Of a stretch of 64,000 nt of DNA, positions 874 through 12,970 are shown piece by piece. This DNA is from Thecamonas trahens ATCC 50062 (lineage: Eukaryota; Protista; Apusomonadida), in NCBI RefSeq assembly GCF_000142905.1, contig NW_013657669.1, forward strand, positions 1-64,000. Direction: 5' to 3'. Made by a program: the position numbers and the translations under genes. Under the pieces are notes generated by a model, which was not told the origin of the DNA, searched no databases, and was given only the letters and a program-made list of their open reading frames with translations. Each line of letters starts with the position of its first letter. Within the stretch, counting starts at the first letter, position 1.

Positions 874-3800
874 CTAAGCGTACTCTCGATCTAGCGAGAA
901 AAATGCTGCAACCTCTGGTACTGCCAGGACGACTTCGTGCGGAAGGAGTCCGAGCATAAATAGCGTGCGTCGGTTGCCAGCCCTTAGTGTCTGGATCATC
1001 GGAACGAGGACGACCAACATGAACGTGCCAAACACCACAAGCTGGAGCAGGAGCGCCACAAGTGGAATCCACCAGAGCAGAACTCGAATGTCGTCTGCGT
1101 CGGCATATAACTGGACAGAAAGTGCCGTCCCGCTGCGGCCCTCGCGTGGACACACGCTGGTGATGACCCCCAGCTCTGCCACGGCTGGCCCTAGGCGCGA
1201 CGCGCTCGCCCGGACCAGCTCGCGCCCAACCCGTACCAGCTCCAGCAGCATATGCGCTAGCCCGTTGGCCACCATCTCAAACAGTGGCTCGCCTGGAGTT
1301 CGACACGGCGCGTCCACAACGAGGCATGCTCCGCTCTTTTCCAGCTTGTCTTGTGGTGGGACATCAAAGTTGTTTCGCTTGCGGAGCGTGATCGTTTGCT
1401 GCGCGTCGCGCATCCGCTGCAACGATTGCCCGAGTCGTTCTCGCGCGCTTGTACCACTTCCGTGTGCCCGGAACCGGACCGTCGCCACAGTCGGCCGTGC
1501 GAGCACATCGTCCCACGGCACTGCTGCAAATGGAACAACAGCCCGCGTAAATGCGCCCAACTTGGTGCTCTCCATCATGTTCATCTCCAGGCCAAACGTG
1601 AAAATGTCCTCGTTGAGCGCCATCCGTGACCCGGCCACCGCCACAATTGATGACACGTTCACCATGTACTGCAGCTCGACAAGCGCGAGGAGGGAGAACG
1701 CGAGGACCACAACAAGACCCATCATGCCCCACAACACCCATCGCTGCCGGACCTCCACATCGTCCCGCTGCATTGCTGTCCGCGCCCGCTGCTGCCCGAC
1801 CGTCTTTCGCCATGCGAGCTCAGTCGCCGACCCAGACTGCATACTCGCCAACCGCGAGTTGTACGCATCGCTCTTTTCTGGTGAGCTCTTGCTCCGAACC
1901 GTACTGAGCTCTTGGTTTGAGAGAAATCCGACGCGCCGTGGCGCAAGCGTTCCCATGTCTCTTAACACATGTGAGTCCATCACGCCCGCACCCAGCTCCA
2001 TACTTGCCTCGTTCATAATGATGCTCACCCCGGCATCGGCGAGGCCGAGCGAGTCGTTGCCAAGTCGATCGGCCCCTTCGTTGCCTTCAACCTCCTCGTG
2101 CTGCTCATCTTCTCCGTACGATGTCGCCCGCTTCAGCCGCACCCGCGGAGCACGCACAATCACAATCGAGTCATGCTGGACAAGTCCGTCGCACGAGGAC
2201 GAACTTGCGGCGTTGTTGACTGGGCCACTTGGCGTCGGTCCAGAATCATCTGGGCTCGCCACACACGATGACTCCATCGACGACGATGATGATGACGACG
2301 ATGGCGATGACGACGACGCCGAAGGCTGGCCACTCACTATCTTGGGCATGCCGCGTGACTCTCCGATCTCCGCCGGCGTCTCTGCGTCACTAGTTGTAGC
2401 AAGTGACGATTGCGATCTGACCGAAGTGTTGGCTGCGTCGTATGAGCCTGACGCCGCTGATGGCGGCACCATGTTGACGGCTGGCGACGTCGTAGCCTGT
2501 GATGATCCCTCTGCGAGGTGCGTCGTCTGCGAAAGCCCAACAACTCCATCCCGCGAGTCGTTAAGCTCTTGTTGGTTCAGTGACTGCGACCGCGACCGCG
2601 ACCGCGCCTTCGTTTGCAGCTCCGCGACCGTCTTGCGCCCAACCGGTGCTCCTTGTCCGTGCTTGTTGGGGATTGAGTACACTTGGACGTTTGGTGAGCC
2701 TAGTGGTGTCATTCGCGGCTTGACTTTGGGTATGTCCGCAAATTGATAGCCTCCAACCGATGATGCAAGACAGTCATCTGAGAGAGACATTGCTTTGAGG
2801 AGGGAGAGCTGTGGCTTCGGGCCGTCAATGTCGCCCTCGCCGCTGTCGAACGGCACGCCGGCTGTCCCACCACCACTGCGTGCCATTTCCCCGGCACTCG
2901 TGCTTGCGTACACGCCGCCGCGCATCAGACGAGCCACCGCAGTCTTGGGAATTGCCAGAAACACGGAAATCGTCGCCCACCGTCGCTTCGACGCCGCTCG
3001 CAACGACGGCCGCACAATGACAAACACCGCCGCAACATGGATTGCCACCATCGCACCCGTTAGCGCGCAAAGTACCACCAGCGACCGCGCGTTCGTCTGG
3101 CTCGCTACCTCCTGCTCAACCTCCACCGCAGCCTCAAGTGCCACCCGCAGCGATTGCCGCCCATTGTACAACACAAACAGCGCGTCGTCGACAGGATCTG
3201 TCACAGAGCTAGCCCAAGCAGCAGGCTCAGCTGTGGCACTTGTGTTGCTTCCCACAGTCGCCATCGGAAGCTGCAGCTTGCGGCGGATGTAACTAGCGTA
3301 CGACACGGCCGCGTCGCGGACGACATGGAGCGCTTCGCGTACATTGTACGGATCGCCACGGACTCGGGCACCCAGGTTGATGCTGGACGGCCACGTCGCA
3401 GCCACCTCGCCGAACCCTTCAAAGTGGTAAAGTTCGACTTGTGCCGCGCCCTCATGCAAGCTCGCAATCTTGGCCTGCGGATCATGAAGACCTTCTGTAG
3501 ATGCTAGCATCCCGTGCCCGTACAGCATCGCCTCCAGTCCGACCCCAATTTCGTCCACCAGCCGCGCCATCGTCGTCTGGACGCTAGCCTCAGATGCAAA
3601 TGACTCTTGCCCGCCGAGCAGCAAAGAGTTGAGCTCTCGCAGCTCCGGCTCCGCGAGCACAGACCCGTTGGCCCACAGCGTGTCCGCCCGCTCGAGCAAG
3701 TAAACCGCCTCGACCGCGCCAACTGTCCGCGCAAGTCCCGCAACACGCATCGCCGCTCCCTGCGCTCGCTGCGGCTGCTCGCGCGCCTGGTCGAGCAAAA

Positions 3801-6800
3801 TCGACGACGCCACAAACACAGAGAGGCAAAGTAGAGCCAAAATAATCGCAAAGGCCGCCACACGCTTGCCGAGCTGAGAAATCGAGTGCTCCGTCTTGGA
3901 CCGGATCGCCCGCAGCGACGTTGCCACGTCCGAGTCGGCCTGCTGCGCAACTCGGCGCCGCGCCGCAAGCCGAGCTCGCGCGCTCGTCACCATGGCATGC
4001 TCCTCCGTGGACACTAGTCTGGTCTCATCTGCCAGTGCTCCAACGTCGGTGGCCACCTCATCGACGTCGCGACCTCGTCTGCGGGATTCACGTGCGCTGC
4101 CGCCGGCAGATCCGTGCCCACTCTCGGCCTCCATCGCCACGTCTACTAACGCTTCAAGGCTCTGCAAAGTGACCGAGCCACGTCGAGTCGTCCGCGACCG
4201 TGACCGTGACTGTGACCGTGATCGCGACCGCGACCGCGAGTGCTTCCGCCGATGCGTATTCTTGGAAGCTTTGCGCGACCGTGGTGGCGTCCTCGGCCGC
4301 ACTCCCGTCTGCCGCGATGATGATCGCGATCGTGGTGGCAGCCCACTCCGTCGCAATTCTCCCGGCGCTGCGCCCCTCACCAGCGTCGATGGCGCCAGCA
4401 TCGACCGTCGCCGCTGCTGTCGCGGCCACCCTGTCATCACCGACGACACCGACGCCCGCGACGTCGACCGCTTACGACGACCCGATCGCTCACCCAATAA
4501 TACGTCCGAGGTCTCGTCGAATGCCGAGCGGGTCGTCGGCGACGGCGGCTCGTCATCGCGCGACGCCACAAACAGCGACCGCTCATCCGAAAGCTCCGCA
4601 CCACTGGCTGACGCACCCACAGAGTCAAACGGCGACGCTAGCGCCAACGTTGAGCGCGGCGGCGCAACGCGGCTACCAGGGCTCCTGTTCCCGGCCCGCA
4701 GCGAGGACATCGACGGCCCCACCCGCGGCATCCGTCCGCTGGTCTGACGACCCGAGCTCATCCGGCCCGAGCTCTGTTTGCTCGTTCCGCTCGGCATTCG
4801 GCCGATGGAAGACTGGCCAGTGAGCGACGAAGACGGAGTCAACGCGGCATCGCCATCCTGTGGCGCGAGCGGAATCATGAGCAACCGGATGGTTCCCGAC
4901 TCTTCCACGTACCCCACCGCAATGACCGGGAGCGAGACGCGCGATGTCACATGCGGGTGCGTCTGCATCATGCACAGCGCCTCGCCACGGTCAGCCTCCT
5001 CAAGAAGCGGGAGCGGGACCAGCATCACCGGAACGTGCGATCCGACATCATCGCTATGCTCTTTGGCAATCGAGTACACCAAACTCGCCTCATCCTGGCT
5101 CTTGAACCAAAGCGAGAGATGATCGGCTGGCGTGGCTTGAGGCCCGGCCATGGACACGTTCTGCACCAGCCGAAGCGCTCTGCCAAATGTGGCGTGAACA
5201 ATGGTCGACGCCACCATGTTGGTCTCTTCACCGGCCCCACCACCGCTCGCCACGGTCTCGCTGCCGTCGAGCCCAACTCCATTTTCCGCACCCTCGTCAC
5301 CGTCGCCGCCATTAAGCGCAAACAGCTCGCCAAGCCCCAGCCCAAGAATAGAGTGCTCCGAGACGCCAAACAGAGCCTCGGTTGTGCCGCTTGTTGTTGA
5401 GAGAATATGCCCAGCTGGCGAAATGACCACTTCCATCGAAAAGGCCGAGACCGTGTTGAGCACAAGCATGCCGATCGAGTCATGCCCAGAGCCACCGAGA
5501 AAGAGCCCGGTAACTACCACCGGCACTTGCTCGCCTTTGCCGTTGCGCACAAGCCGGGTGTGCGCCTCGTACGTCGACGCCGTCGCAGACATCGTCGACA
5601 GCCAGTTGGCGACCGAGCCTGACGCCGCCTGGACGCCCGGGCCTGATGACGGGAACAGCGCCATGATGTGTGTACCCATCAACGCGTCAGAGTGGATCCC
5701 CAGCAGCTGCTCTGGCTTGCCCGAGACACCCACCACGGCACCGCCACGAAGGCAATAAACCGCCACACGCGTGTCGGCCTCGGGCAGCGGTCGCATCACC
5801 GCAATGTACTGTGCAGCCCGTGCACGTGTCCGTACCAGCGACAACGCCACACGCTTCCGGCTCCGGTCCGCACACTTCATGTCAAACACAAAGGTTCGCG
5901 TCAGCGACGACGCAGAGCCGAGCAGCGCGTCCTGCCAGTCAGAGAATGGTGGCATGAGGAGAGTTGTCATGAACGGTTCGCCTCGGAGGGCGACTTTGGC
6001 CGTCTTGGAGTTGTCGTACCCGAGGAGCTTGCGCGCGTGGCTGTTGACCGATGCAATGCCGCCACCCTCCGAGAGCGTCACAATCGCGTCAATCGCCCCG
6101 TTGACAAGCGCCATCGCTCCGGTGTCGTCCGGCCCGCCCACGCCCCCTGTCCCGCCAGCACCCGCGCCTGCGCCACCACCACCGCCCTCATCGGTCGCTG
6201 TCGCCATAGCTACACGCCGCGCCTTGCGGAGGAACCGCTCGGCGAGGATCGGCCGGTTCGAGACTTGGTCAAGGAACGTAGCGTACGAAACAAGTAGACC
6301 AGGTGTGTTCGGGTACTTGCGAACAAGCTGACGGTAGTAGTTGTTAGCCGAACGCTCCGACTCATCGATCCGTGCAATGAGTTTGGCTGACCGCTCCAGA
6401 AACGCGCGGTCAGACCTCAGCAGCGTCCGCCAAAAGTTGGCCAGTGACCGAATGGCTGCGTTGTGGTGCGACCGCGCTGTCCGTAGCATTGTCTCAAACT
6501 GCACATACGAGATGAGATCCATCGTGCCGGTCGTTAGCCCGCGTGCAAGTTGCGCCTGCTCCACCTCCCGCAGCTTGCGGTATCGCAAGAACCGGAGATC
6601 AACCCGTGCGGGCAACGCGAGCGACTGGTCCAGGTACGCGTGTGCCATCGCAGTATTTCCCACGCTCGCCAGAAATCGCACGTAGCAGAGCAGGAGAAAG
6701 ACCGAGTCGGGAAACTGCTCAAAACCCGCGCGAAAGACCGTGTTGGCCGCATCGACGTTGGCAGACTCGATCAGCGCCCGCGCCACAAGCTCGACATCGG

Positions 6801-7935
6801 TCACAAGGTGGAACTTGCGAAGCTTCTTGCCCTCACGCGAGAGTGGTACAACAGCGTTGAGCGCGTGTCGCCGGCGGACATACATCAACCGCCAGCCGCC
6901 GATCGCCGCGCCAAGCACAGCAAAGACCGGCACGCCGGCCAACGCCGCCACAAACATGGCGTTCGAGTTACTATCCTCCCCGTTCCCACCCACCGTGCCT
7001 AGCGCCATTGATGCCAGCCACGTAAGTGCCAGAAAGCCACCTGTCCGCGCAACTTGCAGCCGCGTGTTGTACAGCGCCATGAAGACGACGTGGAGGCCAA
7101 ATATCGACGCCGTGCACCCGATGAGAATCACACCGAGCAGTGTCCGCTCGTTAGGCAGAATTGCAAACGCGAGGAGGAGTACCGACTTGGCCACATGGGT
7201 GGCGCAGTCGACTCGCGCATGCGGCCGAGCAAGCAGGTGGCCCGAGTCGGGCGAGTCGTGAAAGTACACCAGTGAGAGCGCAGCCGTCGCACACAGAAAC
7301 ATGACCATCAAAACGCCAGAGATCACCCCGTACGTTACAACCTCACCCGTCACACACTTTGTATCCGAGTAGTCGTAGAGGACCGGCGGGTCCACCGCGT
7401 AGTCGCATGCCAGCGGCGTCAGCAAAATGCTCATGATCGGAATGTAGAGCACAGTAACTGCAAACGCCACCGCATACCGCAGAAGCCGGAGCGGCCAGAT
7501 CCGGACCCGCGACGAGTCGCGAAGCGCGAGGCCCACATACACCGCGTCGGCCCACGCGAGCAACAGCGCTGCATACACCAACGCGTTGACGACCCGGAAG
7601 ACGTCAAACGAGGAAAAGACAAGCCGCAGCGAGACCACGTTGAGCGTCGGCGTCATCACGTCTCCGCTCCATGGGCCCCACTCAAACGTCTTGTGAAAGG
7701 CAAATGCAGCAATCTGCCCAAACTCGATGAGCAAGACGAGAATAGAGAAGATCGGCTGCGACGACGACCGAGATACAATAGCAAACATGGCATCAAAGAC
7801 CGTCATCTCAAGCACCGCCCGCCACGATGCCGACGACCGCCCCAGCCCAATGTCAGAGAGGTTGTCATCATCCGCACCAGAGAGCACCGACGTGTCCAAT
7901 GATCCATCCGACACTGTGGCAAACGCCTCGCCCAT
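874..7935 (-). CDS. TmcB (tiny macrocysts)-like polytopic membrane protein with multiple PAS domains, 2353 aa
   Basis: Uninterrupted ORF. N-terminal multi-TM block, helical TPR-like region (FRAGFEQFPDS; YYRQLVRKYPNTPGLLVSYATFL), PAS-like segments (DAIVTLSEGGGIASVNSHARKLLGY; PEQLLGIHSDALMGTHIMALFP; TEALFGVSEHSILGLGLGELF), Ser/Arg-rich linkers, further TM pairs near the C-terminus. Confidence 0.8.
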   Translation of the reverse strand: MGEAFATVSDGSLDTSVLSGADDDNLSDIGLGRSSASWRAVLEMTVFDAMFAIVSRSSSQPIFSILVLLIEFGQIAAFAFHKTFEWGPWSGDVMTPTLNVVSLRLVFSSFDVFRVVNALVYAALLLAWADAVYVGLALRDSSRVRIWPLRLLRYAVAFAVTVLYIPIMSILLTPLACDYAVDPPVLYDYSDTKCVTGEVVTYGVISGVLMVMFLCATAALSLVYFHDSPDSGHLLARPHARVDCATHVAKSVLLLAFAILPNERTLLGVILIGCTASIFGLHVVFMALYNTRLQVARTGGFLALTWLASMALGTVGGNGEDSNSNAMFVAALAGVPVFAVLGAAIGGWRLMYVRRRHALNAVVPLSREGKKLRKFHLVTDVELVARALIESANVDAANTVFRAGFEQFPDSVFLLLCYVRFLASVGNTAMAHAYLDQSLALPARVDLRFLRYRKLREVEQAQLARGLTTGTMDLISYVQFETMLRTARSHHNAAIRSLANFWRTLLRSDRAFLERSAKLIARIDESERSANNYYRQLVRKYPNTPGLLVSYATFLDQVSNRPILAERFLRKARRVAMATATDEGGGGGAGAGAGGTGGVGGPDDTGAMALVNGAIDAIVTLSEGGGIASVNSHARKLLGYDNSKTAKVALRGEPFMTTLLMPPFSDWQDALLGSASSLTRTFVFDMKCADRSRKRVALSLVRTRARAAQYIAVMRPLPEADTRVAVYCLRGGAVVGVSGKPEQLLGIHSDALMGTHIMALFPSSGPGVQAASGSVANWLSTMSATASTYEAHTRLVRNGKGEQVPVVVTGLFLGGSGHDSIGMLVLNTVSAFSMEVVISPAGHILSTTSGTTEALFGVSEHSILGLGLGELFALNGGDGDEGAENGVGLDGSETVASGGGAGEETNMVASTIVHATFGRALRLVQNVSMAGPQATPADHLSLWFKSQDEASLVYSIAKEHSDDVGSHVPVMLVPLPLLEEADRGEALCMMQTHPHVTSRVSLPVIAVGYVEESGTIRLLMIPLAPQDGDAALTPSSSLTGQSSIGRMPSGTSKQSSGRMSSGRQTSGRMPRVGPSMSSLRAGNRSPGSRVAPPRSTLALASPFDSVGASASGAELSDERSLFVASRDDEPPSPTTRSAFDETSDVLLGERSGRRKRSTSRASVSSVMTGWPRQQRRRSMLAPSTLVRGAAPGELRRSGLPPRSRSSSRQTGVRPRTPPRSRKASKNTHRRKHSRSRSRSRSQSRSRSRTTRRGSVTLQSLEALVDVAMEAESGHGSAGGSARESRRRGRDVDEVATDVGALADETRLVSTEEHAMVTSARARLAARRRVAQQADSDVATSLRAIRSKTEHSISQLGKRVAAFAIILALLCLSVFVASSILLDQAREQPQRAQGAAMRVAGLARTVGAVEAVYLLERADTLWANGSVLAEPELRELNSLLLGGQESFASEASVQTTMARLVDEIGVGLEAMLYGHGMLASTEGLHDPQAKIASLHEGAAQVELYHFEGFGEVAATWPSSINLGARVRGDPYNVREALHVVRDAAVSYASYIRRKLQLPMATVGSNTSATAEPAAWASSVTDPVDDALFVLYNGRQSLRVALEAAVEVEQEVASQTNARSLVVLCALTGAMVAIHVAAVFVIVRPSLRAASKRRWATISVFLAIPKTAVARLMRGGVYASTSAGEMARSGGGTAGVPFDSGEGDIDGPKPQLSLLKAMSLSDDCLASSVGGYQFADIPKVKPRMTPLGSPNVQVYSIPNKHGQGAPVGRKTVAELQTKARSRSRSQSLNQQELNDSRDGVVGLSQTTHLAEGSSQATTSPAVNMVPPSAASGSYDAANTSVRSQSSLATTSDAETPAEIGESRGMPKIVSGQPSASSSSPSSSSSSSSMESSCVASPDDSGPTPSGPVNNAASSSSCDGLVQHDSIVIVRAPRVRLKRATSYGEDEQHEEVEGNEGADRLGNDSLGLADAGVSIIMNEASMELGAGVMDSHVLRDMGTLAPRRVGFLSNQELSTVRSKSSPEKSDAYNSRLASMQSGSATELAWRKTVGQQRARTAMQRDDVEVRQRWVLWGMMGLVVVLAFSLLALVELQYMVNVSSIVAVAGSRMALNEDIFTFGLEMNMMESTKLGAFTRAVVPFAAVPWDDVLARPTVATVRFRAHGSGTSARERLGQSLQRMRDAQQTITLRKRNNFDVPPQDKLEKSGACLVVDAPCRTPGEPLFEMVANGLAHMLLELVRVGRELVRASASRLGPAVAELGVITSVCPREGRSGTALSVQLYADADDIRVLLWWIPLVALLLQLVVFGTFMLVVLVPMIQTLRAGNRRTLFMLGLLPHEVVLAVPEVAAFFSLDREYA

Positions 7936-8447
7936 GCTTGACGGCTATTTGCCACTGCTTCCGCAGACTGTCTGCTCGACCTCGACGAGCTCGCTCACCG
8001 TCTGCCGCACCAGACAACCGGTCACCAGCGTCAAACTCACACACACAGCACACACCAGTGTTGAGCGAGAGCACACGTAGCACACCCCAGTAGAGCTAGT
8101 CTTTTGTACTTTGCTTGCTGCCTCTCTCGTCACACACAAACCCACACACACGCCCAAACAACGCGCGGAAGGCAGTCAGCAGTTGCGACTGTGCGGCTGT
8201 CTGCTATCGAGTTGAAACGACTGCCGACAACGCCGGCCGTTTGCCAAGAACGACGGTCTGCCCTACCCAGCTGGTGTGGCAATTGACCCCACAAAAATAT
8301 TTCCCCCCCCCCCCCCCCCCCTCAGGAGTACCCTATTTTGTTCCCCTGGACCGCTTGCCAAAAAGATGTCGGGTGGTTGCAGTCACCCGCACCTTGGCCC
8401 CCTACCACCCTACCTGCCTATCTCCTCTCTCTCTGCGACAGCCAACC

Positions 8448-11342
8448 ATGCCCGCAACTAACAAGCATGTGCCGTCCAAGGACCTAACGGTGACGTGGTC
8501 TTCTATGTCAGGGGGGCTCTCGCTCAGCACTCCGACAGGTACCGCAGAGACCATCCTAGTCTTTCTCGTTCTCACCTGGCTCTCGGCGTTGGTGGTGGTC
8601 ACCCAGACCGATGCCCTCATCCACCTCTCCAAGGATACGCTCGTCCCGCTCAACTGGAGCGACCATGCTGAGACCCTTTCTACATACCTCGCGCCGTACA
8701 AGTCGTTCTCGGTCACCCAGGCCTGCGCGACGACCATGGTAGTCACCATGTTCTTCGACACTCTCCGGCTTGTCTTTGCGGAGACCGACAACGAGACTCG
8801 GACGTGCACGTATCTGGTGCTGATCAACTTTGTGGCTCTCACCACGTATGTCTCCATGCTCATGGAGTTTGATCGGTCGTTCTGGCTCAACCCGGAGACC
8901 GGCGTTGTCACCAACGTCCGGCGTATGCTCTCGTGGATTGTCTCGACGCCGCTCATTGTGACGCTCTCGTGCTCGCTGGCTTCGGCCGACCTCCGCACTC
9001 TCATCCGCATGATCGCCATCGACGTGGTCATGGTCCTCACTGGCATTATGTGCTCGCTCGCCTCGCATGCGTCGGCACTTTTCTGGATCACCTCGGTCAC
9101 GTCGTTCGCGGCCTTTGGCCTCATTCTTCTCGAGTACAATGCCCTCTTCCGCAGGGTCACCTCCAAGGTCACCGTCCGCGGCGAAGGCTCGGAGCGCGAT
9201 GTCCGCGCCATCCAGACTGTTCTTATCGTCACCAACTTGTTCTGGCTCGCTTTTCCCACCTCGTGGACCCTCGAGCACGCCGGGTACATCTCCGGCCCCC
9301 TCTCTGAGAAGCTCCTGGCTGTGGCAGACATTGGGGCCAAGTGCGTCCTCTCCGTCGTTCTCGCCCACACCAACCTCGCGTCTGTCTGGCGTCGCGAGGT
9401 GCTTAACGCCATGCGCTCGCAGATTGTCAAGTCGTCCGAGCGCGAAGTGCTCTCGGCGCTCACCCACGAGCTGCAGACGCCGCTCCACGGTATTGTAGCC
9501 TCGGTTGAGCTGCTCAAGAACATGAAGCTCGACGCAGAGCAATCTCGAATCTCGGCTGTCATCGAAAAGTCGGGCAAGCTCCTCTCCAACACCCTCAAGG
9601 ACATGTTTGTCAAGGGCGGCGTCATCGCCGACGAGATTGCCCCGTCTGTTGTCTCGCGCCCGTTTAACATTGCCGACTTGTTCGAGTCGGTCGTCGGTTT
9701 CTCGGCCTCGGCCTCGCTCGCCCGTGGCATCGACATCATCTCGCTCATCGATGACGAGTGCAACGTCACCGCCACCGGCAACAACTATGTGCTGGAGCAT
9801 CTGAGCATGGCTCTCGTTACCTACCTCTCGAACCAGCCTGACACGACCATGACCCTCATCGAAGTCACGCTGGAAGACAACTTTGACGTCCCACCCGAGC
9901 TGCTCGCCGAGTCGCTGCCAGGCGCCGAGTGGTCCACCCTTGTCTGCTCCATCTCGTCCACCGGCGCCGGCATGCGCGAGTCCGACCTCACCGCCGCTAT
10001 CGAGTCGCTTTCCGACCCGCGAACCGACCTCGGCCGCTGCTATGAGCTCACCCAGACCCTTTCCGGCGACCTCGGCATCCGCTCGCAGTACGGCATCGGA
10101 ACTGCAGTCTTCTTCACCATCCCCATCCAGATCGAGCGCGCTGTCGTCCGGCCACCGTCGATCATGGACGCCGCCGGAGACGTCGACATCCTCATCGTCC
10201 ACCCAGTCGAGCTCATGTGCATTTCGCTCGCCCGCTGCTTTGACGCCCCGAGTGTCAACATCACCTGGGCCACCTCGCCCGACGACCTCGCGGCCGCCAT
10301 CAACACTGCCTTTCGCAAGTCGGCCCGCGACACGGCGTTCAAGTTTGCCCTCATCGACGAGTCGGTCATGCAGTCGGCGCCCACCATCCGCCGACTCACC
10401 CAGGATATGCACATCCCGATCGTGGCGCTGGTCAACCCGTTCTCGCCCACCACCGCCAAGCGCCCGCGCGGCATCAAGGCTCGCATCCGCAAGCCGGTTA
10501 CTCTTCTCGGCCTCCGAAACGTCTTTGCTAACCTCACCGAGCGCTTCGACCTCGGTGCCGCCGCGGGCCGCTCGTCCAAGAAGGCCAGCGCCAAGGCCAA
10601 AGCCAAGGCCAGCGCTGACGACAAGGGCGGGGACGCCGACTCGGACTCGGACGAGTACATGGGCTCGGCCACTAGTCGCATTTCGTACCGCCCTGTCAAG
10701 TCCAGGTCGACCAGTCTTGTGACCAGCGACGACTCGGACGGCGCCTCGACTCTCGGCTCGCTTGACCTCACCGTCGACACGCTCGACTCGTCAATCACCG
10801 GCGGTGGTGGCGCCGGCGGCGGCTGGTCCAAGGTCCTCTCCGACCGCCTCTTCCAGTCCATCCTTGTGGCCGACGACTCGCTCATCAACATCATGATTGC
10901 TCAATCAATGCTTGAGCAGGGCGGTTTCAGCAACATCGATACTGCCGTCAACGGCGAGGAGGCTGTCGAGCTCTACGAGCAGTCAGTTCGCTACGACTAC
11001 CCCATCTCGTTTGTGCTTATGGACTGCAACATGCCGGTCATGGATGGCTACACCGCCGTCCGCTCTATTCGCGCTCTGGAGAAGGAGGCGGGCTCGCGCC
11101 GCACCCCGGTCATCGCCTTTACCGCAAACGTCTCGGAGGAGAACCGCCGCCTCTGCGCCGAGGCCGACATGGACCTCTTCCTCACCAAGCCCTTTGAGAT
11201 CGATGACCTTCGCATCCTTGCCGTCTGTCTCCTCGCCGACGTCTCGTCCCCGCCCGACGACGCCACCCGCGCTCGCTTCCAGCAGCTGCTCCTCCACCCC
11301 GACGGTCTGGAGCGGTTGCAGCTCTCGTGGTTCTCCTCATAA
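8448..11342 (+). CDS. Histidine kinase rhodopsin: 8-TM type-1 rhodopsin + HisKA + degenerate HATPase + pseudo-receiver + receiver, ~964 aa
   Basis: Start taken at the ATG of MPATNKH. Helix C RRMLSWIVSTPL, helix D DVVMVLTG, helix F WLAFPTSW, helix G ADIGAK (DxxxK, Lys codon 9339-9341). H-box THELQTPLHGI. C-terminal REC ILVADD...LMDCNMPVMDG...FTAN...LTKP. Confidence 0.9.
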   Translation: MPATNKHVPSKDLTVTWSSMSGGLSLSTPTGTAETILVFLVLTWLSALVVVTQTDALIHLSKDTLVPLNWSDHAETLSTYLAPYKSFSVTQACATTMVVTMFFDTLRLVFAETDNETRTCTYLVLINFVALTTYVSMLMEFDRSFWLNPETGVVTNVRRMLSWIVSTPLIVTLSCSLASADLRTLIRMIAIDVVMVLTGIMCSLASHASALFWITSVTSFAAFGLILLEYNALFRRVTSKVTVRGEGSERDVRAIQTVLIVTNLFWLAFPTSWTLEHAGYISGPLSEKLLAVADIGAKCVLSVVLAHTNLASVWRREVLNAMRSQIVKSSEREVLSALTHELQTPLHGIVASVELLKNMKLDAEQSRISAVIEKSGKLLSNTLKDMFVKGGVIADEIAPSVVSRPFNIADLFESVVGFSASASLARGIDIISLIDDECNVTATGNNYVLEHLSMALVTYLSNQPDTTMTLIEVTLEDNFDVPPELLAESLPGAEWSTLVCSISSTGAGMRESDLTAAIESLSDPRTDLGRCYELTQTLSGDLGIRSQYGIGTAVFFTIPIQIERAVVRPPSIMDAAGDVDILIVHPVELMCISLARCFDAPSVNITWATSPDDLAAAINTAFRKSARDTAFKFALIDESVMQSAPTIRRLTQDMHIPIVALVNPFSPTTAKRPRGIKARIRKPVTLLGLRNVFANLTERFDLGAAAGRSSKKASAKAKAKASADDKGGDADSDSDEYMGSATSRISYRPVKSRSTSLVTSDDSDGASTLGSLDLTVDTLDSSITGGGGAGGGWSKVLSDRLFQSILVADDSLINIMIAQSMLEQGGFSNIDTAVNGEEAVELYEQSVRYDYPISFVLMDCNMPVMDGYTAVRSIRALEKEAGSRRTPVIAFTANVSEENRRLCAEADMDLFLTKPFEIDDLRILAVCLLADVSSPPDDATRARFQQLLLHPDGLERLQLSWFSS

Positions 11343-11439: not shown

Positions 11440-12970
11440 ATGGACACCCAGCAGCACCGAGTGGCGCTCCATGTCTACGACCTCTCCAATGGCCTCGCTG
11501 CCCGCGTCTCGGAAGCCTTGTGTGGCTTCCTGGTGGAAGGCATCTGGTATGTTCGGTAGCCCGCCCCACTCCCCCCCCTCCTTCACCGCCCTGCGTACTC
11601 ACCCAGCAAGTACTTTACATGGACAGGCATACGGGCATTGTGGTGTACAACAAAGAATACTTTTACGGCAACGGGATCCAGGCCATGCATCCGTCGCAGA
11701 CTCCGTATGGCGACCCTGTCAAGGTCCACCAGCTCGGCTTTACTTCCATCCAGGAGCCGCTCTTCCTCGAGTTTGTCCACGAGGTCGGCGACCACCAGTT
11801 CACCCGGAAAACTACCATGTGTTTGATCACAACTGCAACAACTTTACCGCCGCCGCTGTCGAGTTCTTGCTCGGCTCGGCCGCGGCCGTGCCCGAGTACA
11901 TCACCTCACTCCCCGGCGACATCATGGCAACGCCACTCGGGGAGATGATCCGCCCCATGATCGACCGCATGATGCCGGCGACGGCCGCGACTGCGACCAT
12001 GCTTGCACTCAAAGAAGCTGGTCTTCGCGCCATCACCCGCCGCTCGCAGCTTGTCAATCTACGTGCCGAGCCGACCGACCTTGTCGTCGCCTCGACGATT
12101 ACCAACGAGGACATTGCCCGTATGTCGCAGGTCGTCCTTCCCGCCCTAGCCGACCTCGCCGCTGCACCAGGCGTCGACATCGTCACCCGCATCGTCCGCG
12201 CCCTCACCGGTCATGACTGCTCCGACCCGACCGCCAGGCTCGTCCTCGACGACTCGGCTGCTGAGCTCATGACCGCATTCACATCCCTCCTCCCACACGC
12301 GCCCGAGTCGATCTGGTTTGCCCTCATCGACATGTTGCGCCACACCGCCGGCACAATTGCCGGCTTTGCCACCGTCGTCATTCAGCTTCCGAGCTCGCCG
12401 CTCTTTGATCTCATCCAGCTGGTCCTCTCCACCTATTCGTTTACCCGCAACGCACTGGCCCTCCGCCACCTCCGGTCCGCGCGGCTTGCGCTCGCTGTCC
12501 TAGTCCGCGACGTCCTTGCCGCCGTCCCGCTCGCTATCTCGCGCAAGGCGCGCCGCACTGCTCTTCACGACTTCTCGGTCATTGCTCCTTTCATCTCGCA
12601 GCTCATTGCCGACGCCCACGACCCCCTCCGGCTCGCCGGCGCCGACATTCTCGTCAACTACGCGGTCGTCACCACACTCTTCCGGCCCAGTAGCGACGTG
12701 ACACCCACCCTTGTGGCTCTCGCCGAGGAGAACGCCATCGAGATCATGAAGCTCGCAATGTCGTCGTTCCACGTTGAGACCCACGACGACATTGCGCTTC
12801 GTCGTCTTCTCGCCTTTGGACGAGCTGCCATCCTCTCGCCGCGCGCCACCAGCATGGCCAGCTCGCTGGCCTCGATTGGCCATTTCGACGCCGTCCGCAC
12901 CATCTCTGACCGCGCTGCCCCGAATCCCGTCAAGATCGTTGCCAATGAGCTGCTGTTCATCGGTTTGTGA
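11440..12970 (+). CDS. PPPDE/DeSI-1-like desumoylating/deubiquitinating peptidase with PUL/ARM-like C-terminus; intron 11547-11626; apparent 1-nt frameshift near 11803-11811
   Basis: Exon 1 MDTQQHRVALHVYDLSNG...GIW splices (gtatgt...cag) to HTGIVVYNKEYFYG. The catalytic motif YHVFDHNCNNF follows in the adjacent frame after a C/A homopolymer. Confidence 0.85.

Follow-up and report, generated by a model that had tools for sequence, protein, structure and literature searches.

Enzyme rhodopsins attract study for two reasons, as light sensors of flagellate protists and as tools for optogenetics, and to our knowledge all characterized histidine kinase rhodopsins (HKRs) depend on ATP-driven autophosphorylation. 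A gene of the marine apusomonad flagellate Thecamonas trahens ATCC 50062 raises the question of whether retinal can also be coupled to a phosphorelay in some other way. It lies at positions 8448-11342 of the first 64,000 nucleotides of contig NW_013657669.1 (hereafter the window; feature coordinates are window positions on the plus strand unless stated otherwise) and encodes a rhodopsin followed by a histidine kinase (HK) module, a degenerate receiver and a canonical receiver. A reading made from the letters of the window and their open reading frames (ORFs), hereafter the sequence-only reading, had proposed this protein as an undescribed system that may feed a light-driven multistep phosphorelay. 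We find a rhodopsin of the HKR lineage that carries a conserved pseudo-kinase, a result that refines a known family and does not amount to a new system. A natural, expressed and conserved HKR with a kinase that does not plausibly use ATP and a receiver that is intact points to a different coupling of retinal and phosphorelay, possibly through light-gated phosphatase or phosphate-sink activity.

The kinase module and its receivers

The dimerization and histidine phosphotransfer (DHp) domain of the protein (residues 320-392; 9405..9623) was placed by Pfam and by alignment. HisKA was recognized at residues 331-386 with 38 bits, and the H box reads T-H340-E-L-Q-T344-P-L, in which the sequence-only reading had numbered the histidine exactly (THELQ). 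The kinase that follows from that reading does not look functional; the reading had missed that the next domain, the catalytic and ATP-binding (CA) domain, is degenerate. Whereas every other HKR scored 84-112 bits for HATPase_c, Pfam found no HATPase_c in the Thecamonas protein or in its two close relatives, the protein clusters P0045 and P0046, and a hidden Markov model (HMM) built from seven HKR CA domains likewise gave no HATPase_c match in the Thecamonas protein. A profile-profile comparison with hhalign matched only the last 33 residues (531-563) of the CA-like domain, which spans residues 400-564 (9645..10139) and was delimited by box-by-box alignment, AlphaFold2 (AF2) and Foldseek.

The boxes that bind nucleotide in canonical HKRs are altered one by one. 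In the N box, the canonical ..NL..NA.KF.. is replaced by ..MALVT458YLSN, such that the Asn has become Thr458. The G1 box, canonically D-T-G-x-G, reads S504-T-G-A-G, with the same Asp-to-Ser replacement in all three lineages, while none of the three has the F box found in canonical HKRs. Of the canonical G2 box, G-G-T-G-L-G-L, there remains T-D-L-G, together with the deletion of 11 lid residues, and the box is similarly reduced and deleted in the relatives (S-K-L-G and T-R-I-G). A C-terminal beta-hairpin motif is retained. Since the protein lacks the Asp that binds adenine, the Asn that binds Mg, the glycine loop and the lid, autophosphorylation from ATP seems unlikely. In Cr2c-Cyclop1 of Chlamydomonas, a lone G-box change (G533A) is sufficient to abolish function (PMC6284317).

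In spite of these losses, the domain is still predicted to fold as a CA domain. An AF2 model of residues 320-712, made with a 32-row alignment, reached a pLDDT of 80.4 and a pTM of 0.75, with the CA-like part at ~90 and the next domain at ~85. The top Foldseek match of this model was full-length ShkA of Caulobacter (PDB 6qrj; 386 columns, E 6.5e-17), followed by GacS, RetS and HK853, and HK-related domains of plant phytochromes were also among the matches. ShkA shares with the query the order DHp, CA, pseudo-receiver and receiver, but it is a soluble protein lacking a light sensor, is 19% identical, and is an active kinase that is released by binding of c-di-GMP to its pseudo-receiver (PMC7010744, PMC6969517). 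The CA-like domain is also conserved to the same extent as the photosensor, with identities to the two relatives of 41% and 32% for the CA-like domain and 43% and 33% for the rhodopsin domain. It is nearly invariant within the metagenomic clusters; in P0046, variable columns amount to 0.6% for the CA-like domain, 0% for both the rhodopsin and the canonical receiver and 12% for the DHp region. Judged by alignment and predicted fold, the CA-like domain is thus one in which the fold is kept and under constraint and the nucleotide-binding motifs are lost. Such a degenerate CA domain in a rhodopsin-HK is not described in any of the literature that we searched.

The H box itself is not universal in this group. 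In P0046 it is a low-complexity stretch without His, which is also the most variable part of that cluster, even though P0046 keeps the Schiff-base Lys, the equivalent of bacteriorhodopsin (BR) Asp212 and all receiver residues. As P0046 has lost its H-box His and retains Lys, Asp212 and a canonical receiver, the light signal in the query clade would seem to need no autophosphorylation. The Schiff-base Lys and the phospho-accepting His are 42 residues apart in the query and 40 in P0045. Among the canonical HKR clusters (within P0047-P0130), the spacing is exactly 54 in 13 and 68-75 in nine others, and it is also 54 in Cr2c-Cyclop1. This quantized spacing in canonical HKRs suggests fixed helical registers between the last transmembrane helix of the rhodopsin (TM7) and the DHp domain.

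Following the CA-like domain is a pseudo-receiver (residues 575-700; 10170..10547), identified by alignment, AF2 and the Foldseek alignment to ShkA. The acidic pair of a receiver is replaced by His585-Pro586, while Asp637 persists in all three lineages and Lys682 in the query alone. The motifs by which the sequence-only reading had recognized a degenerate receiver, DILIVH and ALIDE, are located at residues 579-585 and 634-638, respectively, and its placing of the canonical receiver at Asp859 (LMDCN) was equally precise. The pseudo-receiver is not unusual, since some canonical HKRs (P0049 and P0059) carry a similar receiver-like segment after the CA domain. A low-complexity linker rich in Lys, Ala, Ser, Asp and Gly (residues 701-800; 10548..10847) is the least conserved part of the protein and leads into the canonical receiver (residues 801-925; 10848..11222), which Pfam recognized as Response_reg at residues 805-922 with 73 bits. 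Its Asp809, Asp810, Asp859, Thr892 and Lys914 were assigned by alignment and confirmed in a codon check. It is the best-conserved domain of the protein, being 46-49% identical to the two relatives, and its catalytic residues are intact in all three lineages. The nearest PDB sequence matches of the receiver were the hybrid-kinase receivers of ShkA, SLN1, CKI1 and AHK, which pass phosphate to histidine phosphotransfer (Hpt) proteins. As had been read from the sequence, there is no cyclase after the receiver; the protein ends with a tail of 39 residues and a TAA stop codon (11223..11342) that contains no further domain. Guanylate_cyc had no match in the window, and its only match on the contig lies ~447 kb in.

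The rhodopsin domain and its family

The photosensory part of the protein is a type 1 rhodopsin of the eight-transmembrane enzyme-rhodopsin type, and a putative retinal protein through Lys298. Pfam matched Bac_rhodopsin (PF01036) at residues 93-309 with 83.5 bits (cut-off 24.6) and an E value of 1.9e-23, and 105 PDB rhodopsin sequences matched the protein at E<1e-3, the best match of the rhodopsin domain being the BR D85S mutant. A hydropathy scan with a 19-residue window gave the eight membrane-length segments that the sequence-only reading had counted, namely TM0 (residues 33-51) and those at residues 92-110, 123-141, 160-178, 188-206, 210-228, 252-272 and 289-307. The last seven coincide with the rhodopsin profile and TM0 is the extra one; it is the strongest of the eight (hydropathy 2.33; 8544..8600) and has a hydrophobic segment aligned at its position in P0045, P0046 and the canonical HKRs. 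Ahead of TM0 is a motif, (T/F)W(S/T)S..GG (8493..8516), with its W and G invariant in the three lineages of the clade alignment, which presumably lies in the cytosol.

The seven-helix core (residues 92-312; 8721..9383) was aligned to BR residue by residue and confirmed by a codon check. Arg159, Ser162, Trp163, Ser166, Thr167, Pro168 and Leu173 correspond in this alignment to BR positions 82, 85, 86, 89, 90, 91 and 96, while Asp294 and Lys298 correspond to positions 212 and 216. The Schiff-base lysine in the DIGAK motif had been numbered correctly from the sequence; its codon is at 9339..9341 and its equivalent is present in every aligned relative. The equivalents of BR Arg82, Trp86, Thr90, Pro91, Asp115, Trp182, Pro186, Trp189, Asp212 and Lys216 are all kept, and the retinal pocket departs from BR at D85S, T89S, D96L and Y185F. 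Ser at the D85 position was considered as a mark of novelty and rejected, as Q, E, M, N, T and S all occur at this site in the HKR and rhodopsin-guanylyl-cyclase (RGC) relatives. The rhodopsin fold assignment rests on sequence profiles and not on a structural model, the single-sequence AF2 prediction of residues 1-415 having a pLDDT of 42.

An exhaustive HMMER search with the rhodopsin domain over 1.84 billion representatives found only two close clusters, P0045 (995 residues, 39% identity) and P0046 (1001 residues, 32%), both intronless, GC-rich and from marine metagenomes (one from Tara Oceans). The remaining matches were ≤28% identical over the full domain, and many of them are canonical HKRs. 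These matches include HKRs with a cyclase, i.e., P0047 (Myrmecia), P0071 (Tetraselmis) and P0098, as well as proteins of 476-570 residues of the RGC type, in which a rhodopsin is joined to a cyclase with no HK module. A word-index search with the full protein retrieved only bacterial hybrid kinases, matched via the receiver, and the same search limited to residues 30-400 retrieved only the protein itself; a feature search of the ESM Atlas gave no usable match. In a maximum-likelihood tree of 78 rhodopsin domains, composed of 44 rows on the enzyme-rhodopsin side and 34 short rhodopsins, the query, P0045 and P0046 formed a clade (SH-aLRT 99) on a long stem within the enzyme-rhodopsin HKR/RGC group (98), and this group was separate from the 34 short rhodopsins. 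The earlier description of an eight-transmembrane enzyme rhodopsin fused to an HK module is supported. The nearest neighbors of the clade were a Tetraselmis protein and P0074, with weak support (85).

Several parts of this anatomy are already known. The absence of a cyclase was rejected as a mark of novelty, because the order rhodopsin, HisKA, HATPase_c and receiver with no cyclase is common: it occurred in at least 11 clusters (P0049, P0053, P0055, P0059, P0060, P0065, P0074, P0106, P0113, P0119 and P0128), and it has been published for the Mamiellales (PMC12704426) and for the heterotroph Acanthamoeba, in which two rhodopsin-HK-response regulator proteins were reported in 2013 (PMC4053784). 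P0049 belongs to Goniomonas avonlea, also a heterotroph. For Thecamonas trahens, TtrahHK4 was listed as a "bacteriorhodopsin HK" by Kabbara et al. in 2019, and in the accessible part of that work it is a catalog entry that mentions neither the CA domain nor the retinal pocket nor a function (PMC6324907). The present gene is probably TtrahHK4, because the genome has only one rhodopsin-HK. Thus, with the literature on the Mamiellales, Acanthamoeba and TtrahHK4 together with the Goniomonas cluster, neither the missing cyclase nor the heterotrophic host is new, and the suggestion of an undescribed system does not hold.

The differences from these relatives lie elsewhere. Cr2c-Cyclop1/CrHKR1 (COP5) of Chlamydomonas and its Volvox counterpart have the eight-transmembrane rhodopsin, the DHp H-E-L-x-T-P-L box and a receiver with its Asp in common with the query, and their rhodopsin domains fall into one clade with it; the identical number of Lys298 is a coincidence. 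However, these proteins have a working, ATP-dependent CA domain, a C-terminal cyclase and the longer Lys-to-His spacing of 54 residues (PMC6284317). The C-terminal class III cyclase by which 2c-Cyclops are defined is absent from the query. The Mamiellales Rhod-HK/Ot-HKR, Acanthamoeba, Goniomonas avonlea and Tetraselmis proteins resemble the query in running from rhodopsin and HisKA to a receiver without a cyclase (PMC12704426, PMC4053784) and in having a non-carboxylate residue at the D85 position, but their N, G1, F and G2 boxes are intact.

A proposed light input to a His-Asp relay

The T. trahens assembly (28.7 Mb in 131 contigs, ~62% GC) encodes the parts that a relay around this protein would need. 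Three Hpt-domain matches were found, including a 451-residue protein with an HTLKGS motif, along with 22 receiver matches and 12 HisKA loci, 10 of which are adjoined by a normal HATPase_c; 11 HKs are reported for the species (PMC6324907). A candidate output of the relay is a 632-residue protein consisting of a receiver (REC) and PDEase_I (G000:C6:307356-309251; L058:6857-8752, minus strand), with the domain order of Dictyostelium RegA. A protein with a CH domain, a cyclase and a receiver is encoded as well, among ~50 cyclase-domain matches in the genome.

The organism also appears able to make its own retinal, as the pathway is complete by gene content. A 1559-residue chain (G000:C6:82105-86781; L056:1606-6282, plus strand) contains CrtI (138-613), CrtB (672-935) and Blh/BCD (1298-1553), and although a CrtY part was not scored by Pfam, the ~360 residues between CrtB and Blh leave room for CrtYc/d. 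A CrtI-CrtB-CrtYc/d-Blh fusion, which would lead to retinal from geranylgeranyl diphosphate, has been described only for Thecamonas trahens (PMC10016063), and the genome includes one RPE65-type oxygenase. No light-harvesting complex genes were found in the genome, in agreement with the heterotrophic, non-photosynthetic host suspected from the window. Of the sequence-only reading's light-driven multistep phosphorelay, then, the Hpt proteins, the receivers and the retinal supply are all present in the genome, but a relay fed by autophosphorylation has become less likely because the ATP-binding domain is degenerate.

The mechanism that we infer as the best reading of this anatomy is that the protein is no autokinase but a node of an Hpt relay, at which light controls phosphotransfer or phosphatase activity; we find the case for and against this proposal evenly balanced. 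The protein would not phosphorylate itself from ATP; instead, its receiver would be charged at Asp859 from a shared Hpt pool that is filled by other hybrid kinases. Light would move the helix joining TM7 to the DHp domain and so change the rate at which the DHp removes the phosphoryl group of the receiver or passes it on. The H-E-x-x-T motif of HisKA kinases serves both phosphotransfer and phosphatase reactions, and the DHp, which keeps this motif, may have retained either chemistry; T356 has been named as a phosphatase residue (PMC6284317). The protein would thus be a light-controlled drain or gate of the His-Asp relay, much as RetS of Pseudomonas aeruginosa acts on GacS (PMC5992135), with the RegA-like receiver-phosphodiesterase and the receiver-cyclase as likely outputs toward cAMP/cGMP and motility. 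RetS is likewise built from a seven-transmembrane sensor, an HK core and tandem receivers, and removes phosphoryl groups from another kinase rather than signaling by its own autophosphorylation (PMC5992135). However, it is a bacterial protein with a periplasmic, carbohydrate-binding sensor, and its kinship to the query is at the level of the HK superfamily, so the analogy is functional only.

A more specific version of this mechanism is tentative and, in our estimation, rather doubtful: the protein may be the first photoreceptor pseudo-histidine-kinase, in which light gates a phosphatase or a sink for phosphate based on the DHp domain, draining the Hpt pool and thereby setting cAMP/cGMP via the RegA-like receiver-phosphodiesterase. 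If so, this would be a third route, independent of ATP, by which enzyme rhodopsins control cyclic nucleotides, and it would occur in the sister group of animals and fungi.

A number of observations weigh against the light-controlled node. The loss of ATP binding is deduced from motifs and a predicted fold, and P0045 and P0046 both keep the N-box Asn. The conservation statistics are thin, as the clade consists of just three lineages. The query and P0045 keep His340 and the H-E-x-x-T motif, a state that would equally fit a kinase that is served in trans. Both the direction in which phosphoryl groups would flow and the outputs to cyclic nucleotides are drawn solely from gene content. A complex predicted for the receiver (796-932) and the Hpt domain scored 0.01, a value that is neutral as to binding.

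Of the alternatives, the one that survives best is an ordinary light-regulated autokinase similar to Ot-HKR or a cyclase-less 2c-Cyclop, in which the divergent CA domain binds ATP and phosphate passes from His340 to Asp859 and on to Hpt. This is the family default (PMC6284317) as well as the model of the sequence-only reading, and it agrees with the intact His340, Glu341, Thr344 and receiver residues, the confident prediction of the CA fold and the survival of G506-x-G508 of the G1 box in the query. We nevertheless consider it unlikely, given the Ser in place of the adenine-binding Asp in all three lineages, the Thr in place of the Mg-binding Asn in the query, the absence of the G2 loop and of 11 lid residues, the failure of every HMM to recognize the domain and the lack of a phospho-acceptor His in the P0046 relatives.

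More improbable still is that the protein modulates another HK, with light tuning the output, either through mixed DHp dimers or through trans-phosphorylation by one of ~10 canonical hybrid kinases. The retention of His340 and the many canonical HKs of the genome would accommodate such a partner, and RetS and GacS rank high among the fold matches, RetS being known to act by DHp-DHp contact with GacS (PMC8498467, PMC5992135). On the other hand, DHp heterodimers are rare, the His-less relatives could not make use of trans-phosphorylation, and a partner is not identifiable, with no HK gene linked to the rhodopsin-HK within the window. The least probable reading of all is a phosphate-independent photoreceptor whose kinase-like part is only a scaffold for dimerization, comparable to the HK-related domain of plant phytochromes, or else a decaying or functionless gene. 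The decayed catalytic motifs and the fold matches to HK-related domains of plant phytochrome A speak for it. Against it, the receiver has all of its catalytic residues in the three lineages and is the best-conserved domain (46-49%), the ORF is intact and transcribed, and 8 of 13 strain differences are synonymous, with most of the non-synonymous ones in the linker.

The rhodopsin-HK is one of exactly two rhodopsin genes in the genome. The second (G000:C51:111579-112748; L002:1366-2535, plus strand; Pfam 67 bits) has RYADYALATP in helix C, in which D and A align with BR positions 85 and 89, DALCK in helix G, and, in mid-gene, a non-rhodopsin stretch resembling an in-frame intron. It gave no match in a homology search and probably corresponds to TtApuR, a published anion channel that absorbs UV (DAQ motif). 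Since apusomonads avoid blue light and no photoreceptor has been assigned to this behavior (PMC12714865), the rhodopsin-HK and the ApuR channel are two rhodopsin candidates for it.

Some further signaling genes of the genome were noted in passing. The REC-PDEase_I gene lies upstream of a gene for a 1215-residue protein with two cyclase domains. A 1906-residue protein (G000:C11:308032-313749; L061:3533-9250, minus strand) encoded on the same contig as the rhodopsin-HK consists of PAS, a weak HisKA, a gap of ~740 residues and a receiver, with no detectable HATPase_c; it was considered as a pseudo-kinase paralog and rejected, as only the receivers match (33%). A 1387-residue cyclase-domain gene is directly upstream, on the same strand, of a GAF-HisKA-HATPase_c-REC gene (G000:C54:28091-36499; L060). 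This pair resembles the published fused model TtrahHK8, although the two genes are in different frames and ~160 nucleotides apart in a six-frame reading.

The gene, its transcripts and its surroundings

The gene is a single intronless ORF of 964 codons and a stop (8448..11342), as had been read from the window, and this assignment is supported by the ORF reading, Pfam and transcript contigs. The frame is open from 8115 to 11342 and 8448 is its earliest in-frame ATG. A short 5' untranslated region (8428..8447) is indicated by a cDNA-like contig of run X1 that begins at 8428, with no in-frame ATG upstream of 8448. X1 is labeled "DNA?" but was treated as cDNA, because it removes an 80-nucleotide GT..AG intron from the downstream gene (11546-11625). 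Its contigs cover 8428-10759 without a break as well as 10835-11238, while three metatranscriptome runs tile 8433-11336 and are empty on both flanks. The strain in these three runs is >99% identical to the window gene and differs at 13 positions, and most of the non-synonymous differences fall into the low-complexity linker. The same linker holds the one stretch without transcript coverage, 75 nucleotides between 10759 and 10835. Apart from this gap the contigs span the ORF, and the domains are therefore not split by introns or separate transcripts; the rhodopsin-HK gene is intronless and expressed, with its domains on one message. The separation of its domains by transcripts, which the sequence-only reading had named as grounds for abandoning its proposal, was accordingly not observed. 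The DNA also recurs in marine and estuarine metagenomes.

An apparent joint from 8322 to 8879 in runs X7-X9 was considered as splicing and rejected, as only 18-20 letters match on one side and the depth is much higher. The contigs touching these two positions overlap the window by ~20 nucleotides on each side and continue into unrelated sequence, and most likely represent a foreign or chimeric contig.

Upstream of the ORF is a shared region of 512 nucleotides (7936-8447) with (CA)n-like runs and a run of ~19 C residues ~130 nucleotides before the ATG. It is bordered by a divergent gene (874-7935, minus strand) for a 2353-residue protein that crosses the membrane several times and contains a TPR domain of the TmcB type (Pfam PF25474, 75 bits) and long Ser/Arg-rich low-complexity stretches, for which no link to light signaling is evident. 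In the downstream gene, the X1 contig from which the intron is spliced out has a single additional C after 11802 that the window lacks, which could reflect either a frameshift or an assembly error.

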